The notes under the pieces were generated by a model. It made no database searches and was not told the DNA's origin. It saw nothing but the letters and a program-made list of their open reading frames with translations. Below, piece by piece: positions 4,330 to 63,570 of a stretch of DNA of 64,000 nt; position 1 is the first letter of the stretch; each line of letters begins with the position of its first letter. This stretch comes from Rhodosorus marinus CCMP1338 (lineage: Eukaryota > Plantae > Rhodophyta), in NCBI GenBank assembly GCA_029953675.1, contig JAMWBK010000005.1, positions 744,001-808,000 on the forward strand. The letters run 5' to 3'. Both the position numbers and the translations under genes were made by a program.

Positions 4330-4775
4330 AGATCGGTTCAATCGGAGGCTACAATCACCGAATGAGGTACTCTAGGAAGTGCGCAGATAGTGCGCCTCCA
4401 AAAATGAGGCAGCAGTACAGCGCCAGGTGACCCAACGGCACGTGGTTTCGTGACATTCCAGTCGGCACAAACGACTGGAGGCAACATCTCATTGCAAACA
4501 TTCGACAAGTTCCTGTAGTACCGCTCACCGACTAAGAGCCATCTGGACCTTGCCCTTTCTGTCGGGCCAACAAAATACCTCGCCACCGTTGCAGATCCAG
4601 AGAACTTTACCCCGATGGCCTTCGGAACATATGGCCGACGTGCAGTACGAGCAATTTGCAGACCTTCGCAACCTCGCGAGACATCTAGACTCCTCGCCCA
4701 TCATCTTGGGCACAGCTCATGTCGCGATGAACCGCACGCTGTGGAGAGGTAACCCTTGGGTTACGCTTTGTAGTT
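4330..4775 (+). mobile_element. Degenerate 3' fragment (RLE endonuclease region) of a CRE-like non-LTR retrotransposon
   Basis: Ordered motifs across frames: R*P (about 4423-4433), DIPVGTNDWRQHLIANI, TKY (4570-4578), NFTPMAFGTYGRRA (4603-4644) and MNRTLWRGN (4727-4753). The last matches INRTLWEGN of the relic at 21.8 kb. Confidence 0.65.
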
Positions 4776-4799
4776 GTGAGAGTGCCAGTACCTTTTAGT

Positions 4800-5322
4800 G
4801 GACAGTGTTTTCTGATCAGGTCGTAATCATACGCTTGTTTCTCCAGTAAACCAGAGTCGCTGGCTCAAAGAAGCGTACAGTGATCGGTATTGAACATGGA
4901 GCGGACCAAGGAAATAAGCGTAAATACTTATCTTCCCTGGCCTTCAACTTTGGTTGCTAAACGAACAGGATCAGTAGACTTAACTGTGCTTGCTACCTTC
5001 CTTAACGCAACAGACGAAAAAATATTGCAGTCTTGGCATAACCATATCCCTTACCCTCAGGTCTCAAGCTACCCGAGTATACCGCCAAGAGATGAGAGCA
5101 CCCGGTTGAATTCTCCTTCGCGGTGCCAAAGCCAGACATCCACCTCAGCGCAAATCTGTCGTTTGTCAGTCGGAGGATACTGACACTAACGACAGATTTG
5201 AGCGGAGTCCTTGATTTTCCCTCGACCTCGCCAGCTCCGAAAGAACACGAGAAGCTTTTGGGCATAGTACGTTTAATCTCCAGCTTCGCTTGCTCAACCC
5301 GATCCATTTCCATTCTACACAA
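4800..5322 (-). mobile_element. Possible highly degraded RLE non-LTR relic (ORF 5002-5322 and downstream)
   Basis: SCSFGAGEV, NDRFALRWMSG, SHLL, AREDKY and RFFEP appear in the order expected for the S..GAG.W / F..alR..LG / H / K.Y / F.P motifs. Weak. Confidence 0.3.
5144..5207. repeat. Long hairpin: 20-bp stem with a 2-nt bulge and 8-nt loop, plus an imperfect outer stem
   Basis: CAAATCTGTCGTT-TGTCAGT / CGGAGGAT / ACTGACA-CT-AACGACAGATTTG (5151-5200); CTCAGCG (5144-5150) pairs 5 of 7 with AGCGGAG (5201-5207). Confidence 0.85.
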
Positions 5323-5423
5323 TCCGCGCTTGGTTGCTCACGCTTATGCCTGAGGTACAGGCACAGAATGGATCAGGAAGGCACCACTCCTTCCCCTTTA
5401 TCTACAAAATGGGCCCGCGTTTG

Positions 5424-6388
5424 CTAAAGCCAGGGAGGTGGATTTGGAGGTATTCTAACGAGATCTGTATCGAAGAGCTCAATGAACTGCTCACTTAGAA
5501 GCCGTACCTGTAGTATCAAGCACGGACGAAGAGAGATTGAGGGATTGCTTTAGTTCCTAGGGAGCTCTCTCGTCTCCACTTGTTTTTCTGTCTCACCTTG
5601 CTTCCTGCAAAGCTTCGATATTCTTCAAACACAGCAGTTAGATTCCAACGCTGAAGTTTTCTCATGCAGCCAACCACAGTGCCGGTTTGATGCCGACCAA
5701 GGTGGCACATGATAAGCAGCGGATAAGTAGAAGTGTCTAGAATCGTATCCATAGCCGTCAAGACTACCTGAGAAAGCATGGACCATGCCGCGTTGAGAGT
5801 AGCTCTCAGTCTATCCGCTTTTCTTCACTCATGGACGTTTTGTCGAACAAACCTCTTCAGACATTGATTTCCATGAAAGGCTGAGGCCGACGCCTCCGAG
5901 ATTCACCATGTCAATGTTATGGTCACTCACGAAGTTCAGACTAGAAATTCAAAGCGGTTGAAGTTAGACGAGTCCAAGCGACTGCCTCAGTGTCTTCAAC
6001 ACCAAGTTCAAGAATTGCACTCACAATTGTTGAGATGGCTCCTCGGAAGCAAGGTTGACGATCGTCTTCAGCTGAAGCTTTTCCAGAAACGGAAAGTTGA
6101 GCTCGTTTGGCATACCAGATCGGTACCTGTACATACAGAACAAAAACATCGTACGAAGCTTCGTCAGTACACCAACATGGTTTGTACATACGCAGAGTCT
6201 CGCATCGGGGGACTCAAAACACCAGAAAGCAGAATACACCATAAAATAAAGTACAGACTTCGCGACGACTTTTCCAAGAAATTTTATGCTCACAAGTTCT
6301 CTTCAACGATTCCAAAATTGATCGGCGGGATCAACGAGCCTCCCAAAACCACATACTCCAAATACCGTTCATCCGCCGCGGCGCCCAT
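5424..6388 (-). CDS. OCA1: OCA1/Siw14-family atypical tyrosine phosphatase-like protein (multi-exon)
   Basis: [81 protein letters not shown] and last exon [25 protein letters not shown]. Confidence 0.88.
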
Positions 6389-6599
6389 TACGAGAAGCGG
6401 AGCCTTCCGTTGAAGAAGATCCAGAAGCAGAACAGAACGTAAACAAAAAGAAGAAGGAGATAATCAAAGAATCTCCAAATCAAACACAGATTCAATAGCA
6501 GCTCAGGAACCTAGGACGTGCTGATGATCTGCACACGAATTAGTGGCCCTTTTGCATCGACCCCGGTAAAAGTGATAGTTGTGTTAAATCTTTTCGCAT

Positions 6600-6661
6600 G
6601 TGCTTGATACCACAGGTAAGGCTTCTGAGTGAGCAGCTCATTGAAATCTTTGAAACAGATC
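6600..6661 (+). pseudogene. Inverted orphan copy of the OCA1 last intron/exon junction
   Basis: 54 of 62 nt identical to the reverse complement of 5462-5523. Reads VRLLSEQLIEIFETD versus [15 protein letters not shown]. Confidence 0.8.
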
Positions 6662-6769
6662 CTATGATGTGATTGTGCTAGGACTCGTTGGCAGGCACTG
6701 ATTTTGACCACCTTAGATCATTCCCTTGTTCTTGGAGTTGGCTTGGTAGATTCAAAGATATGTCTACTT

Positions 6770-6842
6770 CAAGGTTGTGGATGCGGTGCTTCTGGGAGAC
6801 GAGCTAGGAAAGCTCAAAATAGCCTGTCCATCCACAACCTTG
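6770..6842. repeat. 14-bp perfect inverted repeat with a 45-nt spacer
   Basis: CAAGGTTGTGGATG (6770-6783) and CATCCACAACCTTG (6829-6842). Confidence 0.8.
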
Positions 6843-7170
6843 GCTGATTACTGGTTTGAAGGGAATGATTGAGATGGATTGTAATCCAGACTGCTGTATC
6901 TGTTTTTGAGTGGCGTTTTTTCACAGTATTTCGTCTCCTAAGCAGAGTCGTACAAGTCAAGTTTCCCTACATTTCAATGATTTGAATATTGCTGGAGGTC
7001 GAGTAGAGAGGTGGGTATCTTCTTTCCGTCTGAGTGCTCATCGATGGACAACAATAATACTCCACGTAATGACTCGTGTGGTCGCAATGAACCTCAATGC
7101 CGCACAGACCCCTGCCAGAGAAGCCATGCCAGGGTTTCGACTCTCCGTCGCTGTTCACAGAATTACCTAC
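6830..7170 (+). mobile_element. Degenerate RLE non-LTR retrotransposon 3' relic
   Basis: TLADYWF, AESYK (6942-6956), REVGIFFP (to 7028), HRWTTIILHVMTRVVA and FRLSVAVHR (7135-7161) occur in the expected order across shifted frames. Confidence 0.45.
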
Positions 7171-7355
7171 ACATCGACAAGCCCGGATGTTTAGCGTACG
7201 AACCAGCAAGACAAATAGTAAATAAGATCAAGAGCAGGGTCGTGTGCCTGGGAGGTGAGGTTAGCTTTACGTTTGTGCAACCTCCTTGGCATTCCACACA
7301 AGAAAAGCTAACGTACTACAAAGTCCAATAAATATAAGTTTCCTCCACATCACTA

Positions 7356-8210
7356 TTAGTTAAAGGCTGTCGTCCCTTTGCCGTCTGTCGCCGTAGGATC
7401 CTCTTGTAGGTCGATGCCGGTACCTTCCAAGTGAACATTGGTGAGCTTCATGCGTTTGTTACTTCGAGCTTTCTGACCTCGTGGTCTCCTCCTATTAATC
7501 TGAAAATAATAAAGACAAACAGATACGTCGTCAGCCAATGATTGCCCCGCAACCCGGACGTTCTGTGGGTCGGTGGATAAGCGAACATGATCGTACCGCG
7601 AGTTGTGGAAAGTCTTCGACTCTGCCCTTCTTCACCCCATTCTCAATGAGGTATCTATGTACCTCAATTCTGTCTGGCGCATGTATCGTTTCCCACATCC
7701 CTCGAATGTCATCGCTCACAGGCAAAGAGAGAGTCGAGTCATAGGGATATACGATTTCTTTCTTGTCCGTAGAGTTCTTTAGAACGATTACCTCCCGCGG
7801 TATACTGTTTATAATATCCTGGAAGGCAAAAAAGTGTACATAAGAAATGTGAACAATCCATGATCACCAACCAGACTCTAGAAATCCTGAAATCCTACCT
7901 TCATATCGTCAGTAACCCCCTTATAGCAATCATCTAAAGCCGCTCTGGGGACTCCATCATGTCTTTTTCGGAGGAAAACTAGGAGCTCCTCCTTGTTTCT
8001 AATATAGTACTGACTCTTCCACCGCCATCTACCATCTCTCTCCCTCAAAAACTTGGTACTGGACTCCACGTTCTTCCTCAGCTCCTGATTGTTCACAATG
8101 TCCGTCCCCAAGATCTTCTCGATCTCCTCGGGAGTCATCGGTCTGAGCTCCTTCCTCAAGACGTCCAGGACGCTCTTGATCTGCATATTCAAGGTCTGTG
8201 GCTTACTCAT
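7356..8210 (-). CDS. GTF2E2: Transcription initiation factor IIE subunit beta
   Basis: Winged-helix region (VLDVLRKELRPMTPEEI...WRWKSQYYIRNKEELLVFLRKRHDGV..LDDCYKGV), then VIVLKN..EIVYP..VSDDIRGMWETI and a basic C-terminus RRRPRG..KLTNVHLEG..DLQED; three exons. Confidence 0.85.
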
Positions 8211-8582
8211 CTTGACTAGTCTCGCTTCAGCGTTAAAACACTACCACAAACAAACGGGAGAACGTGACTCCGAGTGCAAGAATGAGGATGAACCCCCTCC
8301 AGCGCACACTGTTCTAACCAAAGATTGTCGCAGAGCACTCAACAACTTAGTCCTTTTCTATCAATTCTTCTTCTAGTAAACCTCAGCTCCGCTCGTGGCC
8401 CCCCGCCTCAATCCCTCCTCCCTCACCTAGCAACATACTTATCCATATTCCTCTCTTCTGAGGGCTGGGGATGGTCAGTGAACATGAGCAGGAAGGACCA
8501 TCGTTGGAGGGGCAACTAGTTTGATATCAAATCCTTTTCTCTCAATTCGAGTTAGGCAGAATGATGTCGCAGTTTAGTTCAT

Positions 8583-9206
8583 CTACGAGGCGTCTGATGG
8601 CCTTGGGTTAGCCTCAGGGCGATGAAACTGGCTATCATTTTTCTCTCCTGAACTGTATCGCTCTGGGTTGCTTGCGAAGCCGTGTGACGTATCGAAGCCA
8701 AGCATCCTTAGCCAAAAGAATAGAGGACGAGGTAGAGCTTTCTTTATTCCTGCTTCTGATAACTCGGCCAATGTCGAATTGGGTATTCTTTGCGACGAGT
8801 TCAGGTTGTCACCAGGGGTGTGAGTTCCCTAAATGCATACGGCACCGTAGTACGGTTTGTTTTGTATGTTAACCGGTATCTTGCCCTTATTATGACTCGA
8901 ACGTGCTTGAAGCTACAATCCAGTATATACGAACTGAATTAGTCGGTCCCTGCTGAGTGAGAAGACTTGGAATGGCCGTCCTTGGAAAGGTTCATGGAAG
9001 CCTCGCGATAATGAACGCGGAGGCTCTGATGATCTCAAGCACTTGCGAAGCAACTTGAAGGACTTCGCCTGAAGAAAGCAGATTCGAGCAAGGCAATCGC
9101 CGACTAGGATGAAAGCAGAGATGGCTTCGAGTCTAAAAATCGTTGTACTCTTGGTAGGTTCCCATGACTGGTTTTTCAGTTTCAAATTCTTAATGATACA
9201 AGACAA
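8583..9206 (-). other. Unresolved: small hypothetical gene or another degraded retroelement relic
   Basis: Short ORFs only. LSEAGIKKALPRPLFFWLRMLG weakly resembles the GAG.W..P / F..lR.LG motif. Confidence 0.2.
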
Positions 9207-9319
9207 GGGGTTAGAGCGCCTGCCGACTCGTCCTCTTCGTTAAAAACACGAAGATCCACGGGCCGGGTCTCTGTCTTACTTCTTCTGCAACAGTGCACCT
9301 CCGGTTCCAACGTTAGGGT

Positions 9320-15703: not shown

Positions 15704-16249
15704 AACTTGTGTAATCGTTGCGACTTCCCGTGGTATCTTCTTGTTTCACCTGAGAGAATGTATTCAAGGGCTAGCTACCCGGAGAGCGAACCCCGAGAGC
15801 GAGGAATCACAAACGAGGCAGAGAACGACTCTCAAGAATAACGGAGACTGAACTCCGCCAAAGGGCAAAATGAAGAAAGATTGGAACCGCGACTAGCGAT
15901 CAACTTCATTCCCGAGGTTCTCACATTTTTCGGGGAAGGGTTAGGAAGGCGGGAACCCGTTTGCTTTAGCTCTTTGAGTTTGACGACAAGGTGATGTGAA
16001 TAGGACGACCAAGGTATGATCAGATTAGAGAACGCGTCTGGGAGTGATAGCCTGGATAATGAGTTATCAAGAGCTGTGCGTCGAGGTTCTTCGGACGAGA
16101 ATAGTTCTCTTTTGAGTGGATCTCAGAGGACCCTACAAGCGGCGTTTACTGGTGATCGGATTACTTGTAAGGTGGCACATTGTTCTTAGGATTTTGTAAG
16201 GACTTTTAGCGCCTGTTTCGTTACCGCCATCACGGATGGTCGTGATGTT

Positions 16250-17260
16250 TTGGCTGGTCTTCTGAGGGGTGTTTTCGGTCAAGGGGTCTAAGAGCTAAGA
16301 GCACTGTTTGTCTCTGTTCCTCGCTCCTGCTTCCTGGCACAGCTCAGGATGGATCAGGTTTGATTGACCAAGCCTTCATTGCGAAGAGGAAGCGGAACAG
16401 GTTCACCTTTTGGTTGGGCAGAAATTTGTACCACAATGATGACTCCTGTTTGGAACCTGACGCAGAGCTTGCTAGGAGGACTGCCACTGAGTTGGCCGAG
16501 GCTACCAGTCGATTAGAGGTAGAAACAGAACGAAGTCTTAAAAGTCCGTTTGATTGAAAATTCTGCTGACCACTCTGACAAATCCATTCCCACCCCCGTT
16601 ACGGCGTGCAGAGGACTACTCTTCTTATTCTCTTGTTAACCCTCTTCGTCGACCCAGTGATTACCGCCGTCAAGCATGATTCTCTGGCTCGAGGATTTCA
16701 AGACTTATGGAGGTTCGGTGTTCTCGACACAATAGTCATCTACGTTCTCATCGGGCTTTTAGGAGAGCCGTTTAGAACGTGCGAGTCACTATTGACATCT
16801 GGTAGTCCGTACCTGGGTTAGTATTTCAATTCCAAGAACACGGGCGCTCGACTGCCGAAGATTCTGAATTTTCATCTCGTGTTTCTCCTTCCAGAGGAAT
16901 ACACTCAGGACGCAGAGCAATCCCTAACGCTCAGGACGGTTATCTCCCTTGTGCAGTCGTTCACAAAGTTTTTTTTTTACCTCAACAAATACTTCATCTT
17001 TCGTCTCTCTTCAACCTTCGGCAGAACGGTCGTGCGCTCTTCTCTTCTGGCTCTGAGAGTGGAATCCCTTGGGGACCTGCTGCCTATCGCCATGCCAGAG
17101 AGCTTTTCTGATATCGCAAACTTCATTCTCGCCTAGGAAAGTCACTTCAAATTAACATCGAAAGCCTTGCTTATGCCCGGATTCGCTCATCGCCTCGTTC
17201 GGTCCTCATTGTCATCCTGTAGCCGAATAGTATTGTTGGTCGGAATGGGGACCGTAGGCC
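16250..17260 (+). mobile_element. Degenerate RLE non-LTR retrotransposon 3' relic
   Basis: LLRGVFGQGV*, FTFWLG, KHDSLARGFQDLWRFG (from 16672), GEP (16762-16770), LVVRTW...ALDC (to 16855), NKY (16984-16992), LALRVESLGDL (VESLG at 17059-17073) and HRL...SRIVL, in the expected order. Confidence 0.55.
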
Positions 17261-20582: not shown

Positions 20583-21359
20583 CTACACTGGTTGCTGTGG
20601 TTGTGGCGAGCTCTCCTTGTTGGGTTTAGCGATGATCAGGTGCGTGGTTCCGAGATGAAAGGTCTTTTTATCCTTCACGGTGGAGCCGCTTTCTTCGACC
20701 AATTTGTCAATGTCGCGATTGTAGATGCATCCCCATTTGTCATAGTGCTTCTGGGCGTAAACGGCTTGCAAGTTGCGGAGAACCTCAAATGAACTCGCGC
20801 CGTGCTCCAGGAGAAGAATCGTTCCATCGTCCTTGCACACCCTTTGCATCTCCTTCAGTTGCTTCTCAGGGTGATCAACACTGCACAAGCCAAATGTCCC
20901 GACCACAGTGTCGAAAGAATTGTCTGGATAGTTCAAGTTCTCAGCGTCTTGAACTTCGAACTTGAAGATCTCCCCTTTCTCCTTTGTGCGAAGCTTGTTC
21001 GCTTTTTCCTGGGCTGTTTGAACCATTGCGACGGAAGAGTCCGTGAACGTGACATCGCATTCAGGCTTATAGTACTTGAAGTTTCTTCCAGTCCCCCCGG
21101 CGACCTCCAACACGCGCCCTTCCGCCTTGGAAACCAGCCAGTACCGCATCAGCCCCAGCAGCATCAACCGCTCATCGGCTGAAATCGAGGCGTCGTATTT
21201 CCCGGCAAGATCTTGATATAGAAGTTTTTTATCTTTCTTTGACGTCCTCATTTCCACCGGCGGCACGTTCTCCCCCTCACGGCTCTTCCTCCACAGGAAG
21301 AAAGATCCTACGCCCGCGGCATACGGGAGAAAAAAAAGCCCGGCCTTGAGGAACACCAT
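20583..21359 (-). CDS. OMS1: OMS1-like SAM-dependent methyltransferase (mitochondrial type), intronless
   Basis: N-terminal TM segment, YDASISADERLM, motif I VLEVAGGTGRN, FDTVVGTFGLCS, LLLEHG and WGCIYNRDI. Confidence 0.75.
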   Translation of the reverse strand: MVFLKAGLFFLPYAAGVGSFFLWRKSREGENVPPVEMRTSKKDKKLLYQDLAGKYDASISADERLMLLGLMRYWLVSKAEGRVLEVAGGTGRNFKYYKPECDVTFTDSSVAMVQTAQEKANKLRTKEKGEIFKFEVQDAENLNYPDNSFDTVVGTFGLCSVDHPEKQLKEMQRVCKDDGTILLLEHGASSFEVLRNLQAVYAQKHYDKWGCIYNRDIDKLVEESGSTVKDKKTFHLGTTHLIIAKPNKESSPQPQQPV

Positions 21360-21779
21360 CCAAGTATATGTACAAGTAATAGATCGATTCAAGTAGAATC
21401 GCAAAATCGATTGATGCGAACCGAACTAACGAACAGATCACTCCAAAGCTTGACTTCTAAGATGACATCTCCACCCGCCTCCGTCAAGACAGCCGCAGAA
21501 TTCTATGTTCTGAAAAACCCGTTGAAATTGAAAGTGTCCCAGTTTTGATGGTGCACTGTCCCGTTTCATAAACGTATAGCAATGTGCGCTTCAGGGTCCG
21601 CCTTTGAGAAGAGGAGGATGACGCTGTAACTGTATCCTTTAATGGGTAGCTGCCTAATGGAGCGCAACACTAATTCTATCACTATCGAAGGAACAGGAAG
21701 GGCTTAACCCCGTACCTCGGGGTCTCTAGTTACGATAAAAAGAAAATACGGAGTCAGTGGCTCGTCCGCCTGATCCACA

Positions 21780-22600
21780 CGGAGAGCTGCTAGTGCAAGC
21801 TCTGCGTTCCCTTCCCAAAGCGTTCTGTTTATCTGAGCCCGTAATGCTGCTCGGCTCTCGATCTTTGTCAGCATATGACTGCATCCTTCCCGAGAAACCC
21901 ATGTGTCATCTCTCGTGTCCTTCCAAAAGTATCTATCGCCATCCGTATGAATGTATCATCTGGGTGCTAAATCGATATTTCCTCCTTGTAATGCGCAAGT
22001 TTCCAGCGCTCTGCATGCTTGGCTGCAAATTCGTTTGTATCTCGGCTCCTCGGAAGGTGTCTCGTCTGTAGTGGCGACACCACAGTCCACATCAATTACA
22101 AAGCGTTGCCACGTTCCTGGGTGGATGGCCACCAGGTCCGACTTCAAGTTGCATTTCTCGAAGCAATCTGTGGGTTCCTGTTTCACCTCCCATCGGTTCA
22201 GCCGCTTTGCTATCTCTGTGCATCCCGCATCATGCCTCCTGTTGCCCACAGCTCCGTCGATGTCAGGCAGTAGTGCAATCTTTGTACACTGTTCGTAGGT
22301 TGGTACTATTGAAAGTAGTACCCCTTTCTGTGGTACGAAAGTCCCGGAATCGGCAACCCCAACAATTGTCTGATAGTCAGCTGCATTTCCGGTCCGCTCA
22401 GTTTTCTGGGTACGAAGCGTGGCAAATCTCGTTAGAGTAGCCAGACGCCCTGATCCAACTGCTGCAGCGGAGCGGATTCGGGCTCGATGTTCCGGGTCAC
22501 AACCGTCTGATCTGTCACGAGCCTGATGAAAGCTGTTGGGTGCGCCCCTCGTGAGAGAGACTGTTGTAAGGAACCAAGCTGCATAGCAGGCGTGTCGTGT
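21780..22600 (-). mobile_element. Best-preserved fossil 3' end of a CRE-like (RLE) non-LTR retrotransposon
   Basis: With a few frameshifts: QQSLS, RARIRSAAAVGSG(V)WL (22486-), LSGPEMQLTIRQLLGLPIP (22401-22345), HYCL, RRHD (RHD at 22237-22229), QEP, SDLV (22141-22130), VIDV (22099-22088), AERWKLAHY (22014-21988), FIRMAIDTFGR and INRTLWEGNA (21832-21803). Confidence 0.8.
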
Positions 22601-22924
22601 GGGTTGTTTTCTTTCGGGGGAGGTCGTCAGGTACGTCGGGCGTAAGAAGCCTGCGGACCCTAGAAGCTCCCCTACCGGAAGACAACCTAATATGGGGTAT
22701 TTGTCGCCGAGATCGGAATGCTGAGAAGTATTGCGAAAGCCTTTCCCTTGGGCGCAACGGCGCCGCCCGGGTGAATCGACATTGGTACTCGGTGACCAGT
22801 TAACTATGAATGAATGCAGCAAAACTGCAAGAGCGTGTGGGCTCTTTCCTAGGAAACTCAGCGGGTTGCTCCATTGCGAAGGACTACATAAAATCGGCGG
22901 ATTTTACAAAAAGCGCTTATTTCC

Positions 22925-24327
22925 CTATTTTGGAACCATAATCTCTTCGTACATTGGAAGGCCTCGCATGATGGTACCTGTGACGTCGGAAGCATCGTCC
23001 AGAGCTCTGATCTCAGACTCATCCAGCGACCATCCCAAAGCGCCTGCGTTTTCCTCTGCTTGGGCTTTGGTCTTTGCTCCCGGAATTGGGATCATTCCCT
23101 TACACATCACCCAGTTCAGCGCCACTTGGGCCATCGTTCTATCTCGGCTGCATTCAAATTCATTCGAAGTAGAGCAGGAGTTAGCTCAACGATTGGGAGC
23201 TTATAGATCTATGGTGTGCCTACTTCTCAGCCACCCCCCGGAGCACGGTGAGTAGCTCAGAGCCATTAGCAAGCATGGATCTAATGGATCCATGTCGGGG
23301 ACCCGAAGGCAAATTGCCCTCCGCGTATTTTCCGGTTAGTAGCCCCTGAGCAAGTGGAGAATATGCCAAAATCTTTATGTCTAGAGATTTGCAGAGCTCC
23401 TACAAAACAGATGACGCGGCAGGTTCGTCAGTGAAGCTTTTATCGAACTCCGATGTGGAACGTAACCTAGATCGCTTACCGCCAATTCCTCTTCAGGCCT
23501 TCTGTACGCCAGATTGTAGAGTATCTGGTTGCTAACTAGAGGGACTCCTCGCTCCTGCATCCTCTTGTGCACGACAAGAAGTCTCTTTGGGCCGTAGTTG
23601 GAGACACCAACAGCCTTTATCAGGCCTTGTTCGTAGCATTTTGCAATGCCATCCCAGTATCTTTCATCCAGTCCGAGACCTGGCCAATGCAGCTGGTAGA
23701 GATCTATGCAGTCCTCTCCCATGCGCTCAGCAGATCTCTTACATGCCTCAACAACGCTATCAGCAGAAAAACGAAAAGGAAGGAGCGGGCCAAACTTCGT
23801 GGCGAGAACCATCCTGGATCGCAACAATCATCACCACCTGAGACTGTTATCTAGGCCTCAAGAACTGTTTTTTTGTCGAAACTCACCCTTCCTCGCCAAC
23901 CTCTTTCCTCCGCAGGTAAGATCTCTTGAATCTACCACAACGTCTCTCCGATTCACCGATAGCGTAGACCTCCGCGGTATCGAAGAAGTTGATTCCACTC
24001 TCCAGACTAGCATCAAATGCTTTCTTCTGATCCTGGTGTTCAAGAAACGCATACTCCATGTCAAAACAAGAATTCAAAAAAACCGAAAGCATCCGTAGAA
24101 TTATCAGGACGTCTGGATCTTACGTTCTCGTCCCCTTTCCCCCAGTAGAAATCATCTCCCCACGACCAAGCTCCCACCCCCAGCGGACTCACCTCAAGAG
24201 GTCCCAAGTTCACGCGATAGGATGTCGGTGAGACTTCGGACATTAGACAACAGCCCGAATTACGTGCAGAGCGACTATTGCCCCTCACCAGACTCCATGA
24301 ACTAGAAATAAACCCAAGCCCATCCAT
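22925..24327 (-). CDS. Plastid-targeted aldo-keto reductase (pyridoxal reductase/At1g06690-like)
   Basis: LGVGAWSWGD, FFDTAEVY, LATKF, IDLYQLHWP, AVGVSNYG, AQVALNW and IPIPGAKT..QAEENAGALGW; N-terminus MDGLGFI. Confidence 0.88.
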
Positions 24328-35694: not shown

Positions 35695-36071
35695 AAAGTT
35701 ACCGGGAGATAGAATGGAGGATTCTTCATGGGTGTTGATAGGTTTGGAATCTGGGCTGTTTAATTTGTTAACTATATAGTACATAAGGACGAGTAATTTT
35801 GAGAATAAAAAATCCATTCTACTCTCGTCGTCCTCTGGCGGTGAAGCGCTTCACAGGCTCTAGCCCGAAGCTCGCATGAGCTTAACGAAGACAATCGGCC
35901 ACTAGCGCAGCGAAATTGAAGTGTTGCCGTTGCGCTGATGCGCCACAAGATATCGCTTCATAGCCGCGTCTTACAGCAGTTGCAGCAAGCCGTCAATACG
36001 CGAATGCCGAGCGCATCCTTGAAGGTTCTGGTGTTCACTTACGAGGTCTCCAGAAGAGCGTTCAGGTTCAG

Positions 36072-42960: not shown

Positions 42961-43764
42961 CTACTTGGACTTTGCCGCGGCGGCCGCGGCCGCTGGCCCT
43001 GCGCCCCCACGCTGAGGTTTTGCCATCATGTAGTTTCTGAAGAGCTTCGATCCGACAAACGTGACGATCATCACCGCAGACATACCGTACTTTTTCAGGA
43101 ATGAATCTGGCAGCGCAGGAAGAGCCTTTGTTTCAATCGATATAGTTTCGACTGTGCCATCAGAGTGCGTCCGTGTGAGAAATCCGACACCTAAGCTAGT
43201 AATCTGGAAAGTGTAGACTCCAGCATTTGAGCCATCTCGCCATTCACCCTGCGCGTCAGGAGTAAGAAGAGTAAGCTAAGTATGGAGCGATATGCTAGCA
43301 GCCCGTATTTGCAAACTAGTTTGCCTCCCTACCTGTGAGATCCAAGAGCTAGAGGTGGAACTATGAAACTGAAAGCTAAAGATCTTCTGAAAATCGTCCC
43401 CTTCCCTCTCGCTGCTGTTTTCACCCGTTTCTTGAACGGCAACCGTATCTCCGAGGAGCAAATCCCCCTGAAATTCCGATCGGAAGAGCAGCTTTACAGG
43501 ACGCTCACGCCGATTTCCCTCGTCATCTTCACTTACAATGAGCTTCCCCCGAAGTTGTCCGGTGTGATCCTCCTCAAGCGCACTAGAGTAAATCACGAGC
43601 CTCGAAGGAGACCCAACGCCATCACTCATTCCCTTTCCATCGATCGAGTTCGTTCTCAGATCCCAATTCCCAGCCAAAAAGCTCCCGGCGTTACTCACCG
43701 CCTCATCGCAAACAGCACCTCCCACCCACAACAACCCGCACACACTCAACAGGAGAAACTTCAT
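42961..43764 (-). CDS. Signal-peptide, single-pass membrane protein (C-terminus resembles EMC10-like SFLxKY-TM)
   Basis: MKFLLLSVCGLLWVGGAVC signal peptide; one intron; ...DSFLKKYGMSAVMIVTFVGSKLF...AAAAAAAKSK*. Confidence 0.6.
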
Positions 43765-43974: not shown

Positions 43975-44331
43975 TGACTCTGCTTTTCAGAGAATGACAT
44001 CCTAGCGAACGGCTCCTCACATCGAGAAAATCTCTCAATCGTCATTTACAGAGTGAATCGATGGGGTAATCGTTAGAATGGATAACAATCCAGTGGTCCA
44101 GTGGGTCTTTGTTTCGTGATAAGCTGGGACTATATCAGAAGTGAAGAGCGTCACTCCCTGAGTCATGCTGTTTTCAGAGAAAAGACACGGTACGACCCTC
44201 GGCTCCCCCACATCCACAAGATCTCACAGTCGTCATATCAGAAACGAATCGATGCGATGGTCGTTAGAATGGATAACAATACAGTCAGTTTGTTTCGTGA
44301 TAAACTAGAACCAGGTCAGAGGTGAGGAACG
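43975..44331 (+). repeat. Degenerate tandem duplication (two units, offset about 184 nt) of apparent RLE-retroelement origin
   Basis: Shared blocks TTTTCAGAGAA, CGGCTCC.CACATC, GAATCGATG, TCGTTAGAATGGATAACAAT and TTTGTTTCGTGATAA. Translation across unit 2 gives ERHS..YDPRL..KRIDAMVV, and downstream EK..NFPF. Confidence 0.75.
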
Positions 44332-45151
44332 TGCTGCCCGACCGTTTGCCACCAGGAAAAGGTGGAAAGGAACATGGCGTCAGCCGCAGCCACCGTAGAG
44401 AACTTTCCGTTCATCCTACTTCAATCAAATGAGAAACACAATGATTGATCTACATAAGTCAGCATCATTTATTCAATCAATTTGGGAGGTTAAAAGAGAT
44501 TGATCTAGTCAGCAAGTTTCGGGGTTTGGCTGGATGATTTTTTTTTCGCTGCGAAAGATGGGTTTATTTGCTTTTGCTTTCAGGTTCAGCGCGATTCTTA
44601 ATGGCCGCTCGCCGGCAGCGATCGGTATTGTTTCGGAACATGGAACTCGAGTGCGGGTAACTGTAACTACAACCATGTTACCCGACTTCAAAGCCCGGCG
44701 CAACTGAAAGACCACCAGATTAAAATCCGTCCTGTTCGATGCATCCTTGCAAAAATCTCAGGAAGCGGCCACGGAGCAACATCAATGGAATACGGCTCAA
44801 CGTCGAGGTACTGGAAACCCTCCCATTCCGTAGCGGTGCTGTTCTCAAGAAGTCGATGTCGCCAATGCTTGCTGTACTCCGCGTTGAACCCTAGAGTCCG
44901 GACTTAAGGCGAGACGGCCAGGACCTGAGAGCTCCAGATCACTACTGCACGTGCTATGCGGACGAAGGCTCAAGGCTCATTCGTTCAATGAAATTTTGGC
45001 GAATCTTAGAGCGACCGCGGGAAAAGTAGTCAGACAAGTGCACGTGATACAGAAGCTCTCAGTCGCGTCCTCGAAAGCAAACACGCCGGATAAGTGTCCC
45101 TCCAACCGTGGACGAAAAATCATCGCGCTCTCCCGTAAAACCGCTCTGCAG

Positions 45152-52394: not shown

Positions 52395-53430
52395 CTTCAC
52401 GAACTCAAATGTTGGTAAGAGGGAGCAGAAACAAAATCTCAAGTGTCTTCGAATTTATGTTGCTGTAACAGTCGAATATGGTCTGGTCAAGATAGCACAA
52501 GCAGATACAAGCACCGATTGAGGATGAGAACACGTCAAGTAGGGATTGAGAGAGACACACGCAGACTATCTCAGGGCCAAGGTCTTGTTTCAAGCACGTT
52601 TGCAACAAGCTCAATGTTAGAGAGAAGCTGAAACAAAGAATCTGAAATGCATCTGTTTGGTACAGTCGAATGTGATCTCGTCGGTCTTCTTGCGAGGCCT
52701 TATGCAACCAGCTCGATGTTAGAAAGAGCTGAAACAAAGTCTCAAGTGTTTTCCAATGCATCTGTTTCGTGAACTCCAATGAAGCACTAGGAGATACAAG
52801 CAGCGCTTGAGGATGAGAACAGGTCAGGGTTCTTTTCTCAGACTTTTGCAAGCAGCTCGATGTTAGAAAGAAGCTGAAACAAATCTCATGTGTCCTCCAA
52901 GGCACCTGTTTCGGAAAGCCAATGTGGTCTGGTCAAGCAGTGCACTGGCAGATACCATCACTGCTTGAGGATGAGATCAAGTAACGCCTCTCTCTCTAAG
53001 ACTTTCTCAAAGGCGAATGTCCTGTTGCAAGACCTTTGCAACCAGCTCGATGTTGGAGAGGCAGAAATAAATCTCAACTGTCTTCCAGTGTTTTTGTTTC
53101 GAAAGCCCAATGTGGTCTGGCCTAGTGGGAAGGCAGACGTGCACGCCATGCCAGGATGGCAAGGCGAACATGAGCTTTGCAACAACGAGAGAGGCTAGAT
53201 TGCTACAAGGTTTTCAGATTGTTGCGGAAGAAGAGTTCTACTAAGATAGATACTAGCAAAAGTACATGAAGAGAATGGAAACGAATCTGAACGACTCGTT
53301 CCATGCTCGTAAACCATAATTCTGTGCTTCGTCCTTGAGAAAGCTCGCTCGTTGGTTTCCATGTATGGCGCTGGTTCTTGTCCTCAGTATCCAGATCTCT
53401 AAGAGTTCCAGAGAGCCCTTCATGAAAAGC
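52395..53430 (+). mobile_element. Irregular array of five related segments resembling RT motifs 3-4 of a non-LTR element, followed by an RLE-linker motif
   Basis: Core CTC(G/A)ATGTT(A/G)G...GAAA(C/T)AAA at about 52404, 52609, 52711, 52855 and 53045. TGAGGATGAGA at 52519, 52808 and 52966. Translations QLDVRKS*NKVS, ADTITA*G*DQVTPLS and MPGWQGE; then EKARSLVSMYGAGS...EFQRAL (53337-53420). Confidence 0.55.
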
Positions 53431-53715
53431 AACAGGAAAGACTGAGTTCTGTGGAAGTCACTACGAAGTTTGCAAGCCTGTTTGGGCGAGCTTATCGAGT
53501 CTTGACCAATTGTTGCTTTGGCAGTGGACCTCTGAGCAGCAACTGCGAGAGAGCTTTACGCTGAGAAAGAGACAAATTGAGTCCTCATTATTCGATGGCT
53601 TGAGCAGTCTAGAATTGTCTTGCTTATTAGGCAGACTGAAATTCTGGTTTTTTCCCCGTCTTTTCTTTTATTACCTTTAAATACAGATTGCTTGTATAGA
53701 TATGCGGACCGCTGT

Positions 53716-56730: not shown

Positions 56731-56747
56731 GACCCATGGCCGTGATC

Positions 56748-57297: not shown

Positions 57298-57795
57298 GAC
57301 GAAGGCTCCACGTCCGCTCGATGATCCAAGACTTGTCAATATAGTTAGTAAGTCTCGATCAATACATATCGTCCGCCTCACCATCATCCGAACGCAATCT
57401 GATCAGCGGTGAAGACGCCAATCCGAGGCTTAGAGATCCACAAAACAAAATTTCAATTAAAAACGCCGGACAACCTTCTTTGGAGCTTGTCGAATCTGAT
57501 TGGATTCAATACTGAGTAGCAAGGCAACCCATTGGCTTATAGGCATGACTACATCTTCTGACTGGATACTAGCTCCTTGAATAGTTTTGTTTTTAGATGT
57601 AGCTTCTGACGAAAAGGGTTTCTTGGTTTTTAATTAGTTTTTAAATAGTCTTTGTGAACATCATGCTGCTCATGGCCCGGCAAGACGAAGCCTGTGTTCT
57701 TGCTGCCGTTTCGAGAGTTTTTGAGCGGCTCTGACTTGGAAGCATGTAAATCAATATAGCAGTAGATCCCGATGTGAGGACCTACAAGTTTTGTT

Positions 57796-59542
57796 TCAGT
57801 ATGTGGGGAACTCCGGGTTGCACTCCTGTCTCCATGCGTCGAGTCCGCCGATTACATCGGTTGCGTTTTCGATTCCTGCTTTCCTCATCATGGAAACGGC
57901 CGTTGCAGAGTCAACGCCTCTGCGACAAATCTAAAAGGCAAGAAAAAAAGACGCACGTAAATCCTCCATCGAGACAACACAGACTTGAAAAGTGCCAGGA
58001 ATGTTAGCGTCGACTATCACAACGAACCAAAATGATCTCCTTGTCGCCAACCCGATTCTGAATCTAAAAAAAGGAAGAACCAGACAAACGTTAACAGGAT
58101 TTCAAACTACGCTTCCGTTGCAGCTTGCAGAGTCCCTCGTTCGTGTTAGCTTACAGTGATAAGCTCTTTTGACAGTTTGGTGATCGGAATGTTCTGGAAT
58201 CCACCGATAGAGCACATATCAAATTGCTCTTTTGGCCGCACATCTATACACAAAGCATCTTTCAGTCGACCCTTGTCCAGCAGAGCGGTTGCTCTCAGAC
58301 GACCTTGGTCAGTACTCTGCGGGGTCGCACAGCTGCCCGCCAGAGTGAATGAGCCGTAGTCAAACTCGGCTGGATTGACGATCCGCTGGCTACTGTCCTC
58401 GGGGTTGCCGCAGGCTCGGCAAGTTTTGCTTCTCGATCGGAGACGGATCACCCTCGTTTCACAGCTCAGACCATCATATAGAACCATTCTCCTAGAGCAA
58501 ACTTCCGCACCCTCCGAGCAGAAACCCAAACCGCGATTGGCTTAGTGAGACTCGATCGCCGATAGATATGTGAGCTTGCTTCTTCCTTGGGTTATCCGAG
58601 GAGATTACCTCAATTTCAGCGGCAAGCTTCAGCGCCTCTACGGCTTGCATGGTGCCAATGACGCCTGGAACTGGTCCCAAAACTCCGGCAGTATCGCACG
58701 AGCCTACACAATCTGGGGGAGGCGGGGAAGGGAAAATGCATCTGTAGCAGGGTGACTCTTCCGAGTCACAGTAAACGCTAAGCTGCCCTTCAAACCCTAG
58801 TGCACAAACCGTTTTTGCCGGATTCAGTGCCTAGGCCAAGAACCGATGTTCAAAGGACCACGGACGCCTATTTCCAGACGCTCTAGCTCACCAATTGCGG
58901 ATCCAGAGACAAGAGGCTTACGCAGGGCAGCGCAAGCATCACTGATAATGTACCGAGACTCGACATTGTCCGTGCAGTCTAGGACAATATCAAAAGGTAA
59001 AATTAGTTGCAGAGCAAACTTGGCTGTGATGCCTGTAGATAACGTGCAAATCGAAGAGCCGGGATTGATCCTCATCAGTGAGTCCCTCAATGACAAGCAC
59101 TTATCTGCCCCTACGCTCGCATCCGTATGTCCAATCTACGACCATGGAACGACGGAAAACAAGATTTCTCATCAACCGATGAAAATCCCAGAATCGAAAA
59201 CATTGAGAACACTAAAAAGCAAGAGACGGCAAAAGTATATCCTACCTGTCTATGCAGGTTACTTCTATCTACACTATCTCCACGGTCCAGTAGGCCCAAC
59301 CTCCCCACTCCGGCGCTCGCCAAGTACATCGCCGCGGGACATCCCAAGCCCCCAGCACCAATGACGAGCACGCTCTTCTGAGAAAGTCTCTTCTGTCCTT
59401 CAACGCCAAACCTCAACAGAAGCATTTGACGGGAATATCGCTCCAACACATCATTCGAGAAAGCCTGCCGAACGCCGTTCTCCTCCTCCTGAGCAGTGCT
59501 GGCACCCTTCAACTCTTGGAGTTCACCCCACGGTGATTTCAT
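57796..59542 (-). CDS. MOCS3: Adenylyltransferase/sulfurtransferase MOCS3/Uba4
   Basis: [72 protein letters not shown], and rhodanese IDVRP..., ICRRGVDS and GGLDAW. Confidence 0.93.
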
Positions 59543-60172
59543 CGGGAACTTCTAATTCTGCTGTTTAGCGAAGTGAACCAACACCCCACGAAGCAGAAAC
59601 TTTCCTGACTCAAGGTTGTCCAACGCCACCAACAACGCTAACTCACAAGCCTAACCCCGCCTTCCTCAAAACCTTACAAACCAATCTAAGCGGACCGCCG
59701 CGAGGAAACGAAATGAGTTCATCAAAGCAGACGGTCGGGCTCATCAGCTTCAACGACTACGCGAGAACTATTCCTTCGAGGCTACTACAGGATTGACAAG
59801 TTTAGTTAGTCCGGAGTGGACTGAAGGATGATCGCGACGGCTGAAGATAAAAAGCGACCCTAAACAAGACAGAGCTATCGTTGCTCAACAATAAGTGAGA
59901 CAGCGACCGCGGTAGACCGAGGAAGACGAGCCTCTGCGGAAAAGTACCGACGTCGATCACCAAGAAAGGACCAACGCTGGTCACGTACGGGTTATGAAGC
60001 CCGAGGGTTCCGAGGGTGAAGACGCAGTGCGCATCCTCGCCCCTCACGCGGACGGAGCGGAATGATTGTCAAATGCCGAGATGGATGTTGAGCGCTGTGT
60101 TGACGAGGAATCCTTGTGCTTCCACGAGGATGGGGACAGAACGCATCCTCCGTTTTCTTCGACGGACTGTCA

Positions 60173-60289
60173 AATTTTTACTGTTAGTTATCTACACTTC
60201 TGTTAGCTTCTTCGGCTGATATGTCGCCTTAATTTTTTACTGTTAGTTATCTACACTTCTGTTAGCTTCTTCGGCTGATATGTCGCCTT
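60173..60289. repeat. Near-perfect 58/59-nt tandem duplication spanning the stop codon of the RRM gene
   Basis: Two adjacent copies of AATTTTT(T)ACTGTTAGTTATCTACACTTCTGTTAGCTTCTTCGGCTGATATGTCGCCTT that differ only by one T. Confidence 0.95.
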
Positions 60290-62360
60290 GAAGTGTTCAA
60301 GCGCGCTTTCCACCTTGAGCGCGTGGTCAAAGCTCTCCAGAACAGCTCTGGGTTGATCCTCTGGAGGCTTGCCCTTTTCAACACTGTTCACAAATCTTTC
60401 CACAGATTCAATAAGCTCCTTGACGCCATCTCCAAAGCCAATCTGAGGTTCCTCGCGAGCGGGTGGTTGCGGCATGCTCGCGAGTGACGATTGATCATCT
60501 TCAAGATTCTCAATCAAAGACGCCAGCTCACGATTTTCGCTCCAAAAATCCACCGCGCTCTCCTCAAAAAGCTGGTTCATCATCTGCTCGTTTTCGTTTT
60601 CTCCTTCCGTGGCTACCTCGCCCAAATTGTCATTCCCCTCCAATAGGTTGAGCTTTTTGTCTCCTTCCCCGGACTCACCAGAGACAACCACACCTTGAGG
60701 GATCTGTCCTTCCGCAGCTTCATTCTCGTACTGATTGCTGCCAGGCTCATTATCCGCAAGGGCAGAAAACACGTTAAAAGAATCTCCACCTAGGGAAATC
60801 CCGTTGTCTCCATCGTGGACAAACTCAACCAGATCCTCACGATCCTCACCCTCAGCAAACTCAGCGAACGGGTCAGAGGTATCGACATCGAGTGGTTTCG
60901 CTCTTTTGTCAAGAAAACTCCTATAGCTTCTTGGATCGTTCCCGTCAGATTCAAACGCGTCAATGAACGAGGCCGTAATGAAATAGTCACTCAACGAGGC
61001 GACTTGTAGCTTCCGAAAGCCCAGGAGGGCGTCGTCATTGTTCCGAAAGACAACATTCACGAAGACGTTTCGAGTTGGCGTAAAACGCCAGAACCAAAAC
61101 TCCACTCCACGGAGATCTCTGAGCAACTTCTCAAGATTCTCAAGCGGTTCATCCTCCCGAATCTTAAACGAAAGCGCTCTTCTGGGAACAGGATCAGCAA
61201 CATAGTCATGTATCCTAACGGGTTCACCGCCTAGCCTCACGGACGCCATTGTACTTCTCATGTTCGCCGCGTCTTCGGGTCGCTCATACTCAACAAAGCA
61301 GCTGCCGTTAAGCATCGGCCCAAAGCGTTTGATGGCACCAAATTCCGAGCAAATCTCGCGAATGTTCTCCGGTTTTCTAGTCGAGCAGTGAACCACAAGC
61401 TTCCTGGGGTCGCCTTTCTTTCCAGTTGCATCTTGTTCGCTCACCCCGCTTCCAGCCGCGCTCTTGTAAGTGATCACCTGCGCATGAATTGGTCTGTCCT
61501 CTATGATGTAATCGCTTATGCCAGACACTACCCGCAGGGCATCCACATCGCGCTCAAACTCGACAATTCTTGAGCCAGGGCCTTCCTCAATGACCCTAAT
61601 TGGTAGGGAGTAGGGCTCACAGAGATCCACAAGCTGGTGATTCTCGAACTTTTTGGGCATGCCTTTGAACCGCACGTATCGCCGAGCAGCGGCTTGTTCT
61701 TTCGTTTGCATGAAACGGTCCACCTCCGTTCGATACTGAGATCCAAAGACCTTGGCCGTGTCGTCAACGAGTCTTGGGAACAAAGGCCGTTCCTCCGCAT
61801 CCGAGTTGTCTTGATTCTTTCAGAGATGAAGAGAAGCAGGTCTTAGAAGTCGGCTTTGGACGTTATCTGGAGGTGATAGTACCTACAATGCTTAGAGAAA
61901 CGCCCTCAAGGTCGTAGGCGTTCCATTGCTCTTCTATGATCTGCTTGACCTATGAAGTAGCAACAGGACGTAAGCATTCGAACAAGCTGACCCTTTCAAC
62001 CTGCCTCTAAAAACCCTATCGAAGACTTACCATTGCCGGCGAGTTGGTTTCAGCGGGAAGAACCGAATCATCACTGCCGGACGAGAGATTTGAGCGCAAT
62101 GGAGGAGATTGAACCAATCCTTTCTCTGAACCGAACTTCGTACCCGAACTGAAACTGGCTCTCAACCATAATCGATCCTACACCAGAAACGGCTTGAAGA
62201 TGTTAGCCCACGCCCTGAAACCTTCCCAGAGTAAGCGAGATTCAAGTTATGGGACGCGATCATGCAATCAAAAGCTCACCAGATGATTACCGCAACCAAG
62301 CACTCGGACCGCACCCAAGCATCCGCTAGGTGCTGTTTTCAACCGAATTCTGCCAACCAT
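60251..62360 (-). CDS. Multi-RRM RNA-binding protein with acidic C-terminus, probably organelle-targeted (5' exons tentative)
   Basis: 510-codon terminal ORF with RNP-like motifs (VRFKGMP, RIVEFE, LVVHC, SCFVEYE, VFVNVVF) and a D/E-rich tail. Upstream exons were inferred from GTAAGT/CATAG sites; the candidate ATG at 62360 gives an Arg-rich N-terminus. Confidence 0.7.
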
Positions 62361-62580
62361 TGAAATCATAGCCTCAACACACGACCGGAGGACCAAGACT
62401 ACACCCAAACTGAGTTCTCCTCGAAGTCACTACATACTAAAATTTACCGTTTCTTCACATAGCAAGCCTTCTTCTAGACGCCAAATGACCCTGAGAAAGC
62501 TGTAAACGTCAACTCTTAAGTCGCGCCTACAGCGGTGATCTGTCACCCTCGTCCAGTTCCCGACCGGTGACGATGGACAC

Positions 62581-63570
62581 GGCGGTGTAACTTAATCGGT
62601 GAATCAATGTGTCATTAACGGGCTTGACCGGTATACTAGGAAGGAAGACTGTTTTTTGCAGTTGATTTGAACGCATCCACAACATCCATGTGTCCTCCTC
62701 TGAACCAATTGAGCTCCACTGACGGTGTAGCTTCAAACTGTGGCTCCACTGTAGTTTTGTTCAGCAGGGAATGTGCTCAGTCGCATCTTGTGCTGCCATC
62801 CCCCAGGGTGCGTTTTCGTTCATTTACGAGCCATTGAGGACGACCACGACGGTGAGACTTACCAACGTACTGGATTCACGATGTGGTGCAGGAGTGCAGA
62901 TTACTGCTGCGCCTTGCACGCGTTGAATCTCCTGTGCATCCAAAAACGTCGTCAAGGACCGATAAGCTTCCTTTAACTACCGCCGACGGTGTGACTCAAC
63001 TTTGTGGTTTATCGGTGTAGTTTGTTCGCGGAGAATCCTGTTTGGCAGTTGTATATGTTGGGACGTGCACACGTCCATGTGTCGTCCTCTGGACCAAGTA
63101 GTTCCACCGTCCGCGGTCACCGGCAATCTCGCAATGGGGTTGAAGACGTTTGTGAGATGTTTTCCGAACGAAATGCCAGTATATCCCGTTTCCACGGACT
63201 GCATAGTTTCATAACGTGGCTTAGATGCAGTTCAAAGCCGGCTGAATGCTTCTGACGATGCAGTTACGATGTGGTTCAGAGTTGGATAATCACTTAATCA
63301 AAGTCGAACTACCTTGCAGTCAGACTGGCTGACGGTGTGACTAAAGGATGCGCTAGGCGAAATGTAGCTTGGCATAAACAGCAAGCAAAATCCACTCTTT
63401 CTTTCCACGTTTTTACAGTTCAGAGCTTACGATTCCGAGTTGCTTTTCCGTAGCTGGGCTTCGGCCGGTAGGTTCGTAGCACTGTAGAACCACAGCAGCC
63501 AGAAAGTTGCTTGTATACAAGAAACCGCGTTAGCACAGATACGTATGCTATTATGCAGACGGTGTAGCTC
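62581..63570 (+). repeat. Degenerate dispersed repeat (G(A/G)CGGTG(T/A)(A/G)(A/G)CT x6) with a longer duplicated block; partly RLE-like
   Basis: Motif at 62581, 62721, 62848, 62985, 63331 and 63558; block 62650-62720 resembles 63039-63108; frame at 62874 reads IHDVVQECRLLLRLARVE...SRTDKL. Confidence 0.55.

Follow-up and report, generated by a model that had tools for sequence, protein, structure and literature searches.

R2 elements insert at one site in the 28S rDNA, whereas the two decayed copies that we describe here (fossils G and A) both lie between protein-coding genes. R2, known from R2Bm of Bombyx mori and R2Tg of Taeniopygia guttata (PDB 8gh6, 8ibw, 9dou, 9nl2 and 9nl3), is one of the closest comparisons for the family to which these copies belong. 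R2 and the family alike encode one protein, in which a LINE-type reverse transcriptase (RT) precedes a linker, a CCHC knuckle and, at the C-terminus, a PD-(D/E)xK endonuclease, and the order RH(D/N), EP, PD, DV, KxxY is common to both. However, identity to R2 is just 14-19% in fold alignments, and the R2 sequence alignments match best in a region that does not include the long conserved block preceding the knuckle in the family, 'RARxRSxxGxGxGxWL...LGLP'.

Spliced-leader RNA genes are the insertion sites of the classical CRE elements, but no spliced-leader target is evident at fossils G and A. In its domains the family fits the CRE/SLACS clade (CRE1, CRE2, SLACS and CZAR of trypanosomatids), as it combines an RT with a C-terminal restriction-like endonuclease (RLE) and has no apurinic/apyrimidinic endonuclease (APE). 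The APE-type LINEs, represented by LINE-1 ORF2p (PDB 8c8j, 8sxt and 8uw3), are similar to the family in leaving 5'-truncated copies behind, and the RT of P0077 matches ORF2p (E 3e-4 to 1.6e-3). In contrast to APE-type LINEs, the nuclease of the family is C-terminal and restriction-like, and a Pfam scan of eight long relatives found the N-terminal APE domain (Exo_endo_phos) in none of them.

We consider it very probable that two of the 25 gaps between coding sequences in the DNA analysed here hold dead, 5'-truncated copies of an RLE-type LINE, and that the remaining gaps are without detectable LINE sequence.

The window and its genes

The window is a stretch of 64,000 nucleotides of nuclear DNA from Rhodosorus marinus (GCA_029953675.1, contig JAMWBK010000005.1, record positions 744001-808000), and it is a gene-dense part of that genome. 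The deposited calls place 26 genes in the whole window, with SPRING1, PI4K and RING/BTB genes and a p450 cluster among them. Rfam and tRNA scans of the whole window were empty and gave no RNA gene. The share of the window outside the called CDS extents is 44%, which corresponds to 28.2 kb of CDS-free DNA in 25 gaps.

A sequence-only reading of this DNA had listed nine gaps as gene-free, and had proposed that each of them holds several motifs of one ordered series from the 3' end of a CRE-like LINE. Eight of the nine do lack a called CDS. The listed gap at 16.3-17.3 kb, on the other hand, overlaps a called gene (16016-17136, plus strand) of 257 aa that has no Pfam match. The motif series itself proved real at 21.8-22.6 kb and 4.3-5.3 kb and was at chance level in the seven other listed gaps.

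Table 1. Features of the window discussed in the text
Feature	Position	Strand	Remarks
Fossil G, RLE-type LINE 3' end, 5'-truncated, frameshifted	21626..22626	-	~1 kb
Fossil G, linker motif RARxxS..GxW: 'DPEHRARIRSAAAVGSGR', frame break, 'WL'	22438..22498	-	profile columns 53-72
Fossil G, LGLP motif: 'RDLPRF...IRQLLGLPIPGLSYHR'	22327..22431	-	profile columns 73-130
Fossil G, endonuclease core: 'RRHD...EVKQEP...KSDLV...VIDV'	22088..22243	-	profile columns 131-184
Fossil G, KxxxY block: 'AAKHAERWKLAHYKEE', then in-frame stop	21761..22086	-	compare P0002, P0004, P0007
Fossil G, FxPxAxExxG block: 'FIRMAIDTFGRT', after in-frame stop	within 21761..22086	-
Fossil G, C-terminal tail: 'RAQINRTLWEGNAELALAALRVDQ'	within 21761..22086	-	3' of FxPxAxExxG block
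Fossil A, short decayed copy	4437..4753	+	~0.3 kb
Degenerate tandem array, not a fossil	52396..53125	.	families D1, D2, D3, D5; profile scores null-level
Tandem repeat, not a fossil	44015..44332	.	families D4, D7; profile scores null-level
Weak candidate, not significant	6507-6641	-	31.3 bits, z 3.1
Weak candidate, not significant	35738-36019	-	26 bits with broad profile; tblastn E 0.03
Weak candidate, not significant	53230-53553	-	tblastn E 0.033
Weak candidate, not significant	62787-62913	+	22.9 bits

The LINE family behind the motif series

The linker-knuckle-endonuclease module has 520 relatives at E <= 1e-3, and five of these, P0001-P0005, are R. marinus transcripts. In P0005 an upstream RVT_1 domain is joined to the linker, and of eight long relatives that were scanned, seven have RVT_1 200-450 residues upstream. 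A search of PDB with a single sequence gave noise only, but a family profile of 32 sequences (A2) matched R2 proteins over the knuckle and endonuclease (E 3.8e-12 to 2.2e-7). In a fold search with the family model, R2 took ranks 1-7 (E 1.7e-6 to 1.4e-3), and the best matches of the P0077 RT were R2 and LINE-1 ORF2p. In the family a CCHC zinc knuckle lies immediately N-terminal to the endonuclease, and fossils G and A keep only remnants of this knuckle. Three knuckle columns (C166, C184 and H195) are invariant in the family and two more (C169 and H179) are conserved at 90% or more; in the endonuclease, D230 and D245 are invariant and K275 is near-invariant.

These profile, fold and RVT_1 results bear out the earlier assignment of the motif order to the linker, CCHC knuckle and PD-(D/E)xK RLE of an R2-group LINE. 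Thus, the family is an RLE-type (R2-group) non-LTR retrotransposon with a C-terminal PD-(D/E)xK endonuclease, and its intact protein is a LINE-type reverse transcriptase followed by the linker, the CCHC zinc knuckle and the R2-type endonuclease.

No Pfam model matches the linker-knuckle-endonuclease module, and Pfam scans of the 21.9-22.8 kb ORF and of P0001 returned no family. Remnants of this kind therefore escape domain-based annotation. The class as such is already known in R. marinus: in the published RepeatMasker table CRE/SLACS LINEs are the main repeat of the genome, with 4036 elements that amount to 2.82 Mb or 9.04%. The label 'CRE-like' agrees with this table, which is the sole evidence for CRE and is a genome-wide label, not one tied to fossil G or A.

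Fossil G

Fossil G comprises a linker, a knuckle remnant, the endonuclease, a C-terminal tail and ~90 nt of 3' UTR (Table 1). Its 3' end, at ~21626, is the limit of DNA similarity to transcript L001. Its neighbours, likewise on the minus strand, are an aldo-keto reductase gene with its stop at 22925, less than 300 nt from where the fossil starts, and a methyltransferase gene that starts at 21359. Our frameshift-tolerant profile aligner, a custom script whose calibration consists of dinucleotide shuffles and reversed sequence only, gave a collinear minus-strand alignment of 160 bits with a broad profile, 444 bits with the Rhodosorus family profile and 350 bits with subfamily profiles. Additionally, hmmsearch found five collinear pieces (E 3e-19 to 3e-6), and the match to P0001 has a database-wide E of 2.2e-7. 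Six of ten motifs occur in order, and none of 200 shuffles reached that number. The linker motif is common to P0001, P0005 and P0006. Residues aligned to the invariant H195, D230 and D245 of the family are kept, as is the aligned K of the endonuclease, and PD has become SD.

A stop-free frame of 315 codons covers 21959-22903 on the minus strand. This raises the question of whether the region at 21.6-22.9 kb could be a live gene, either as a domesticated endonuclease or as an unannotated 288-315 aa ORF, rather than a dead copy. We regard a live gene as very improbable, because the family match has at least nine frame breaks, so that the alignment runs in 10 segments, and requires read-through of one in-frame stop. 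In addition, the CxxC of the knuckle was lost in a frame break, leaving '...RLHYC...' at 22249-22302, and the long open frame includes neither the LGLP and KxxxY blocks nor the C-terminal tail, which are read in other frames. The deposited annotation also has no gene at this place. Gene finders had been expected to call such copies hypothetical proteins; this was not borne out, as both fossils are uncalled in the deposited annotation.

Fossil A

Fossil A lies inside a 3.6-kb gap (1787-5423), ~670 nt from the stop of a Y_phosphatase2 gene (5424, minus strand). It reads, in order, 'GTWFRDIP', 'RQHLIANIRQVPVVPL', a knuckle remnant, a deletion, 'ENFTPMAFGTYGRR' and 'LRNLARHL...MNRTLWRGN'. The deletion has removed ~100 profile columns, from RHD to KxxY, that is, the endonuclease core. 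Five motifs are in the chain in the gap at 4.3-5.3 kb, a length that 3% of shuffles reach.

A chance alignment is the alternative to be weighed for fossil A. Single pieces of it are weak by themselves: although the tblastn matches are all collinear, those to P0007 and P0001 have E values of 0.006 and 0.01, and the broad profile reached just 22.7 bits. The match to P0071, however, has an E of 5.5e-5, and three to seven pieces are collinear on one strand and in the correct order. Subfamily profiles gave 58.7 bits (z 13.7) against a null with a mean of 26.3, an sd of 2.4 and a maximum of 31.1, the family profile gave 32.5 bits against a null maximum of 26.7 (1452 bins), and single sequences gave 40.0 bits (p 1.7e-6). 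Moreover, 'MNRTLWRGN' matches 'MNRKLWQGN' of P0002, a family-specific string. We therefore hold it very unlikely that fossil A is a chance match.

How the fossils may have formed

Both copies are 3' ends that lack the RT, in agreement with the earlier proposal that 5' truncation leaves 3' ends behind. An RT profile found no RT remnants among the six-frame pieces of the window, as expected because the copies are 5'-truncated. Based on what is established for R2, we propose that the R2-type endonuclease would nick the target and that reverse transcription would prime from the nick. Reverse transcription would often stop early, so that the inserted DNA would comprise just the element's 3' end. 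Inserted copies may later decay neutrally. The two fossils occupy differing intergenic contexts; a 3' boundary can be placed for fossil G alone, and neither copy has a definable 5' junction.

The remaining gaps

The sequence-only reading had gone further and had ascribed to such LINEs the majority of the gene-free gaps and a large part of the intergenic DNA. The numbers do not support this broader claim: fossils are present in two of the nine listed gaps and two of the 25 CDS-free gaps, and they make up ~1.3 kb of the 28.2 kb of CDS-free DNA (~5%). The frameshift-tolerant profile search of the gaps, which that reading had suggested, recovered fossils G and A and left the other 48 gap-strands at null level.

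It could be argued that most gaps do consist of RLE-LINE copies, but copies decayed past ordinary searches. The two gaps with genuine copies, four more candidates below threshold (Table 1) and the rank of CRE/SLACS LINEs as the main repeat of the genome would all be in keeping with this. We nevertheless find it improbable, because the 48 other gap-strands score like shuffles, with a mean z of 0.11 (p 0.54) and 0.24 (p 0.10). In the seven other listed gaps the profile scores are within the null, and motif chains do not exceed in length those of shuffles or of other DNA in the window (the observed chain is matched by a fraction of 0.20-0.91 of shuffles). Motifs of two residues, for instance EP, PD and DV, are expected by chance several times in each kb when three frames and stops are allowed. 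With seven of the nine gaps at chance, strings of motifs of two or three residues that are pieced together from different frames do not count as evidence. Two of the listed gaps are instead tandem repeats, and a third lies partly over a called gene. When six-frame pieces were compared all against all by blastp, no similarity between gaps emerged, and Pfam found no domain in the 150 longest open frames of the gaps.

The four sub-threshold candidates could be real, very old LINE pieces. If all four are counted, fossil cover rises to ~2.2 kb of 28 kb. Scores at their level, however, also occur antisense in real exons: the PI4K gene yields 25.7 bits and the RING/BTB gene 29 bits, and for the aldo-keto reductase gene exon 1 gives an antisense tblastn E of 0.001. 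For 53230-53553 (minus strand) the tblastn match to P0002 extends over 114 aa at 29% identity, and shuffle calibration gave no support to it as a fossil; the same was true of 62787-62913 (plus strand) and 35738-36019 (minus strand).

How far such a search can reach was estimated with simulated copies. Recovery was 12/12 with 30% of the sites changed and 3.7% indels added, 5/12 with 40% changed and 0/12 with 50%, figures that are optimistic for unrelated LINE subfamilies since the test sequence was itself in the profile. The detection limit of all methods applied is ~40% changed sites. Beyond ~40-50%, short motifs read by eye are no evidence for copies either. The sequence-only reading also suggested that the LINEs may target gene ends, an idea for which the window offers two copies. 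A related proposal is that the intergenic DNA is built largely of LINE 3' ends more than ~40% diverged, and that the elements insert preferentially in the DNA that directly follows stop codons, a 'safe harbour'. We give this little credence; if it were true, fossils G and A and the four candidates would be just the youngest layer. On our preferred reading, that of two dead copies, the remaining gaps would be ordinary intergenic DNA, made up of promoters, UTRs and spacers, with decayed tandem repeats in two of them.

As this LINE class has already been reported to make up 9% of the R. marinus genome and the other gaps show no signal above chance, the finding is an ordinary one, and it has little importance beyond annotation. 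It means that old, RT-less copies of the dominant repeat class of the genome are also present between housekeeping genes, and that both segments are better masked, as remnants of LINEs, than treated as gene candidates.

Tandem repeats in two listed gaps

The degenerate array takes up most of the listed gap at 52.4-53.4 kb, and its copies are 62-89% alike and spaced ~100-300 nt apart. The second repeat occupies the listed gap at 44.0-44.4 kb and consists of two copies of a ~190-nt unit that are 78-80% alike. According to the R. marinus genome paper, mitochondrial minicircle repeats are abundant in the nuclear genome, and the two arrays (44.0-44.4 and 52.4-53.2 kb) might be nuclear copies of such repeats.

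Identity of the LINE module

A sequence-only reading had ascribed a series of protein motifs in nine gaps of the window to the C-terminal linker, zinc knuckle and restriction-like endonuclease of CRE/R2-group LINEs, and what it took the motifs to be was correct. A 288-aa ORF at 21956-22822 (-) had no Pfam match, and database-wide it matched one protein, P0001 (E 2.2e-7), whose relatives are R. marinus transcripts. In one of these, P0005, a reverse transcriptase domain (RVT_1) immediately precedes 'RARIRSAAGSGSGVWL...LLGLPIP'. Searched with a profile, a set of 1.84 billion representative proteins yielded 520 relatives at E <= 1e-3. Eight long relatives were scanned; RVT_1 lies 200-450 residues upstream of the LINE module (linker, CCHC knuckle and restriction-like endonuclease, RLE) in seven, and an APE nuclease was absent from all eight. 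The family consensus keeps the order of the motifs first listed (RARLRS..G.GAW, RLGLP, C.C...H...C, RHN, EP, RPD, DVTV, K..KY, F.PF..E.FG, LQRGNA), with complete or near-complete conservation in its Cys, His, Asp and Lys columns. A 32-sequence profile matched R2 proteins of solved structure over their C-terminal knuckle and endonuclease (E 3.8e-12 to 2.2e-7). The seven best PDB matches of the AlphaFold model of P0001 (pLDDT 75.9; >90 over the nuclease) were all R2 proteins, and the best matches of the RT of one long relative were R2 and LINE-1 ORF2p. Thus, the module is that of a LINE, with an endonuclease homologous to that of R2. Because no Pfam-A model matches the linker-CCHC-RLE module of this family (alignments A1 and A2), its remnants are missed by domain-based annotation.

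Two decayed LINE 3' ends

With the family profile, hmmsearch detected fossil G in five pieces, collinear and spread over three frames (E 3e-19 to 3e-6). Our frameshift-tolerant profile aligner linked 10 segments that span the linker through the C-terminal tail; the broad profile gave 160 bits and the Rhodosorus profile 444 bits. The copy has one in-frame stop and has lost the knuckle CxxC, and it keeps the residues that align with the catalytic D, D and K. Its DNA is 64-69% alike to the Rhodosorus-type transcript L001, past the stop codon and for about 90 nt into the 3' UTR. This similarity stops at 21626, with no poly(A) after that 3' end, and a search for an upstream RT remnant found none. 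Fossil G fills the spacer from the aldo-keto reductase stop (22925) to the methyltransferase start (21359). It has no gene call in the deposited annotation, which contradicts the expectation that gene finders would call such copies hypothetical proteins.

Fossil A scored just 22.7 bits with the broad profile (null in 500-nt bins: mean 15.3, sd 2.3, max 27.5). With family-specific tools, sequence comparison gives a clear match: 32.5 bits with the Rhodosorus profile against a null maximum of 26.7 (1452 bins), 58.7 bits (z 13.7) with subfamily profiles when one large deletion was permitted, and p 1.7e-6 with single sequences. Collinear tblastn matches were obtained with the related proteins P0071 (E 5.5e-5), P0001 (E 0.01), P0008 and P0007 (E 0.006). 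The copy retains GxWxRDxP, the LGLP block, a knuckle remnant, FxPxAxxxxGR and NRxLWxGN; a deletion has removed about 100 profile columns (RHD through KxxY). Upstream, at 1787-4400, is the largest CDS-free stretch (3.6 kb in all), with a GC minimum of 0.42; its open frames reach at most 189 codons and gave no Pfam, RT or LINE signal.

Both fossils are old copies. It had been suggested that such LINEs may target gene ends, a generalisation that these two copies do not support.

Features of the window (window position = record position minus 744000 on JAMWBK010000005.1)
Feature	Position	Strand	Context or evidence
Fossil A	4437-4753	+	LINE 3' end
Fossil G	21626-22626	-	LINE 3' end
Methyltransferase gene	20583-21359	-	deposited gene call; exact match of its protein locates the window on the contig
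Tandem array	44015-44332		intergenic; 2 copies of ~190 nt, 78-80% alike
Tandem array	52396-53125		intergenic; copy spacings ~100-300 nt, copies 62-89% alike
Sub-threshold candidate	6507-6641	-	31.3 bits, z 3.1
Sub-threshold candidate	35738-36019	-	26 bits; tblastn E 0.03
Sub-threshold candidate	53230-53553	-	tblastn E 0.033 over 114 aa
Sub-threshold candidate	62787-62913	+	22.9 bits
Fossil-free score	PI4K exon	antisense	25.7 bits
Fossil-free score	inside RING/BTB gene		29 bits
Fossil-free score	aldo-keto reductase gene exon 1	antisense	tblastn E 0.001

The remaining gaps

The window carries 26 deposited gene calls, and 25 CDS-free intervals between CDS extents sum to 28,168 nt (44% of the window). 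Eight of the nine gaps fall within these intervals; the ninth, at 16.3-17.3 kb, is not gene-free, being overlapped by a called gene at 16016-17136 (+). This gene (257 aa) and those at 42961-43764 (-; 239 aa) and 63779->64000 (-; 466 aa) carry no recorded Pfam family. Scans of the window for RNA genes came back empty.

The observation was confirmed in part, and the proposal that most gaps are LINE fossils was not supported. Motif chains, as originally defined, were at chance level in seven of the nine gaps. Frameshift-tolerant searching recovered fossils G and A, whereas the other 48 gap-strands, tested gap by gap against dinucleotide shuffles with 65 subfamily profiles and 19 Rhodosorus-type sequences, resembled the null (mean z 0.11, p 0.54, and 0.24, p 0.10). 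The 150 longest open frames over all gaps contained no Pfam domains. A simulated 800-nt copy was recovered in 12 of 12 trials with 30% of sites changed and 3.7% indels added, in 5 of 12 at 40%, and never at 50%.

Four sub-threshold candidates gave collinear, multi-frame matches to portions of the LINE module, and some of them could be very old LINE fragments. None was significant once corrected for the number of tests, and scores like the best of them also arise where fossils are impossible.

Degenerate tandem arrays, unrelated to each other, occupy the gaps at 44.0-44.4 and 52.4-53.2 kb. According to the genome paper, nuclear copies of mitochondrial minicircle DNA are abundant, and minicircle constant regions contain tandem repeats; such copies are a possible source of the two arrays. 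Separately, a 59-nt unit occurs twice in tandem at 60172-60289 (98-100% identity), spanning the stop codon (60251) of an RRM-domain gene; this pair could reflect recent duplication, or an error of assembly or polishing.

LINE content and transcription

Detectable fossils amount to about 1.3 kb, making up 2% of the window and about 5% of its CDS-free fraction, so the claim that LINEs supply much of the intergenic DNA is not supported here. The depositing paper identifies GCA_029953675.1 as the 31.2-Mb nuclear genome of the red alga Rhodosorus marinus; for it, the authors' RepeatMasker table gives 4036 CRE/SLACS LINEs (2.82 Mb, 9.04% of the genome), 0.06% R2/R4/NeSL and 4.03% unclassified repeats. 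Therefore, a large CRE-type LINE population is already on record for R. marinus. LINEs are scarcer in the window than in the genome on average. The legend of Supplementary Fig. 10 of the genome paper describes a low Kimura substitution level for most repeats. The findings in the window are all within known biology.

In L001 (JGI 3300016967, 2684 nt), one LINE copy is represented by its 3' end; the ORF of this copy is broken by a frameshift near 1977, and the element ends at about 2204. Directly after it, 2226-2684 is an internal fragment of a second copy, which resembles window positions 22539-22576. Thus, LINE copies can be nested or head-to-tail, and can be transcribed.
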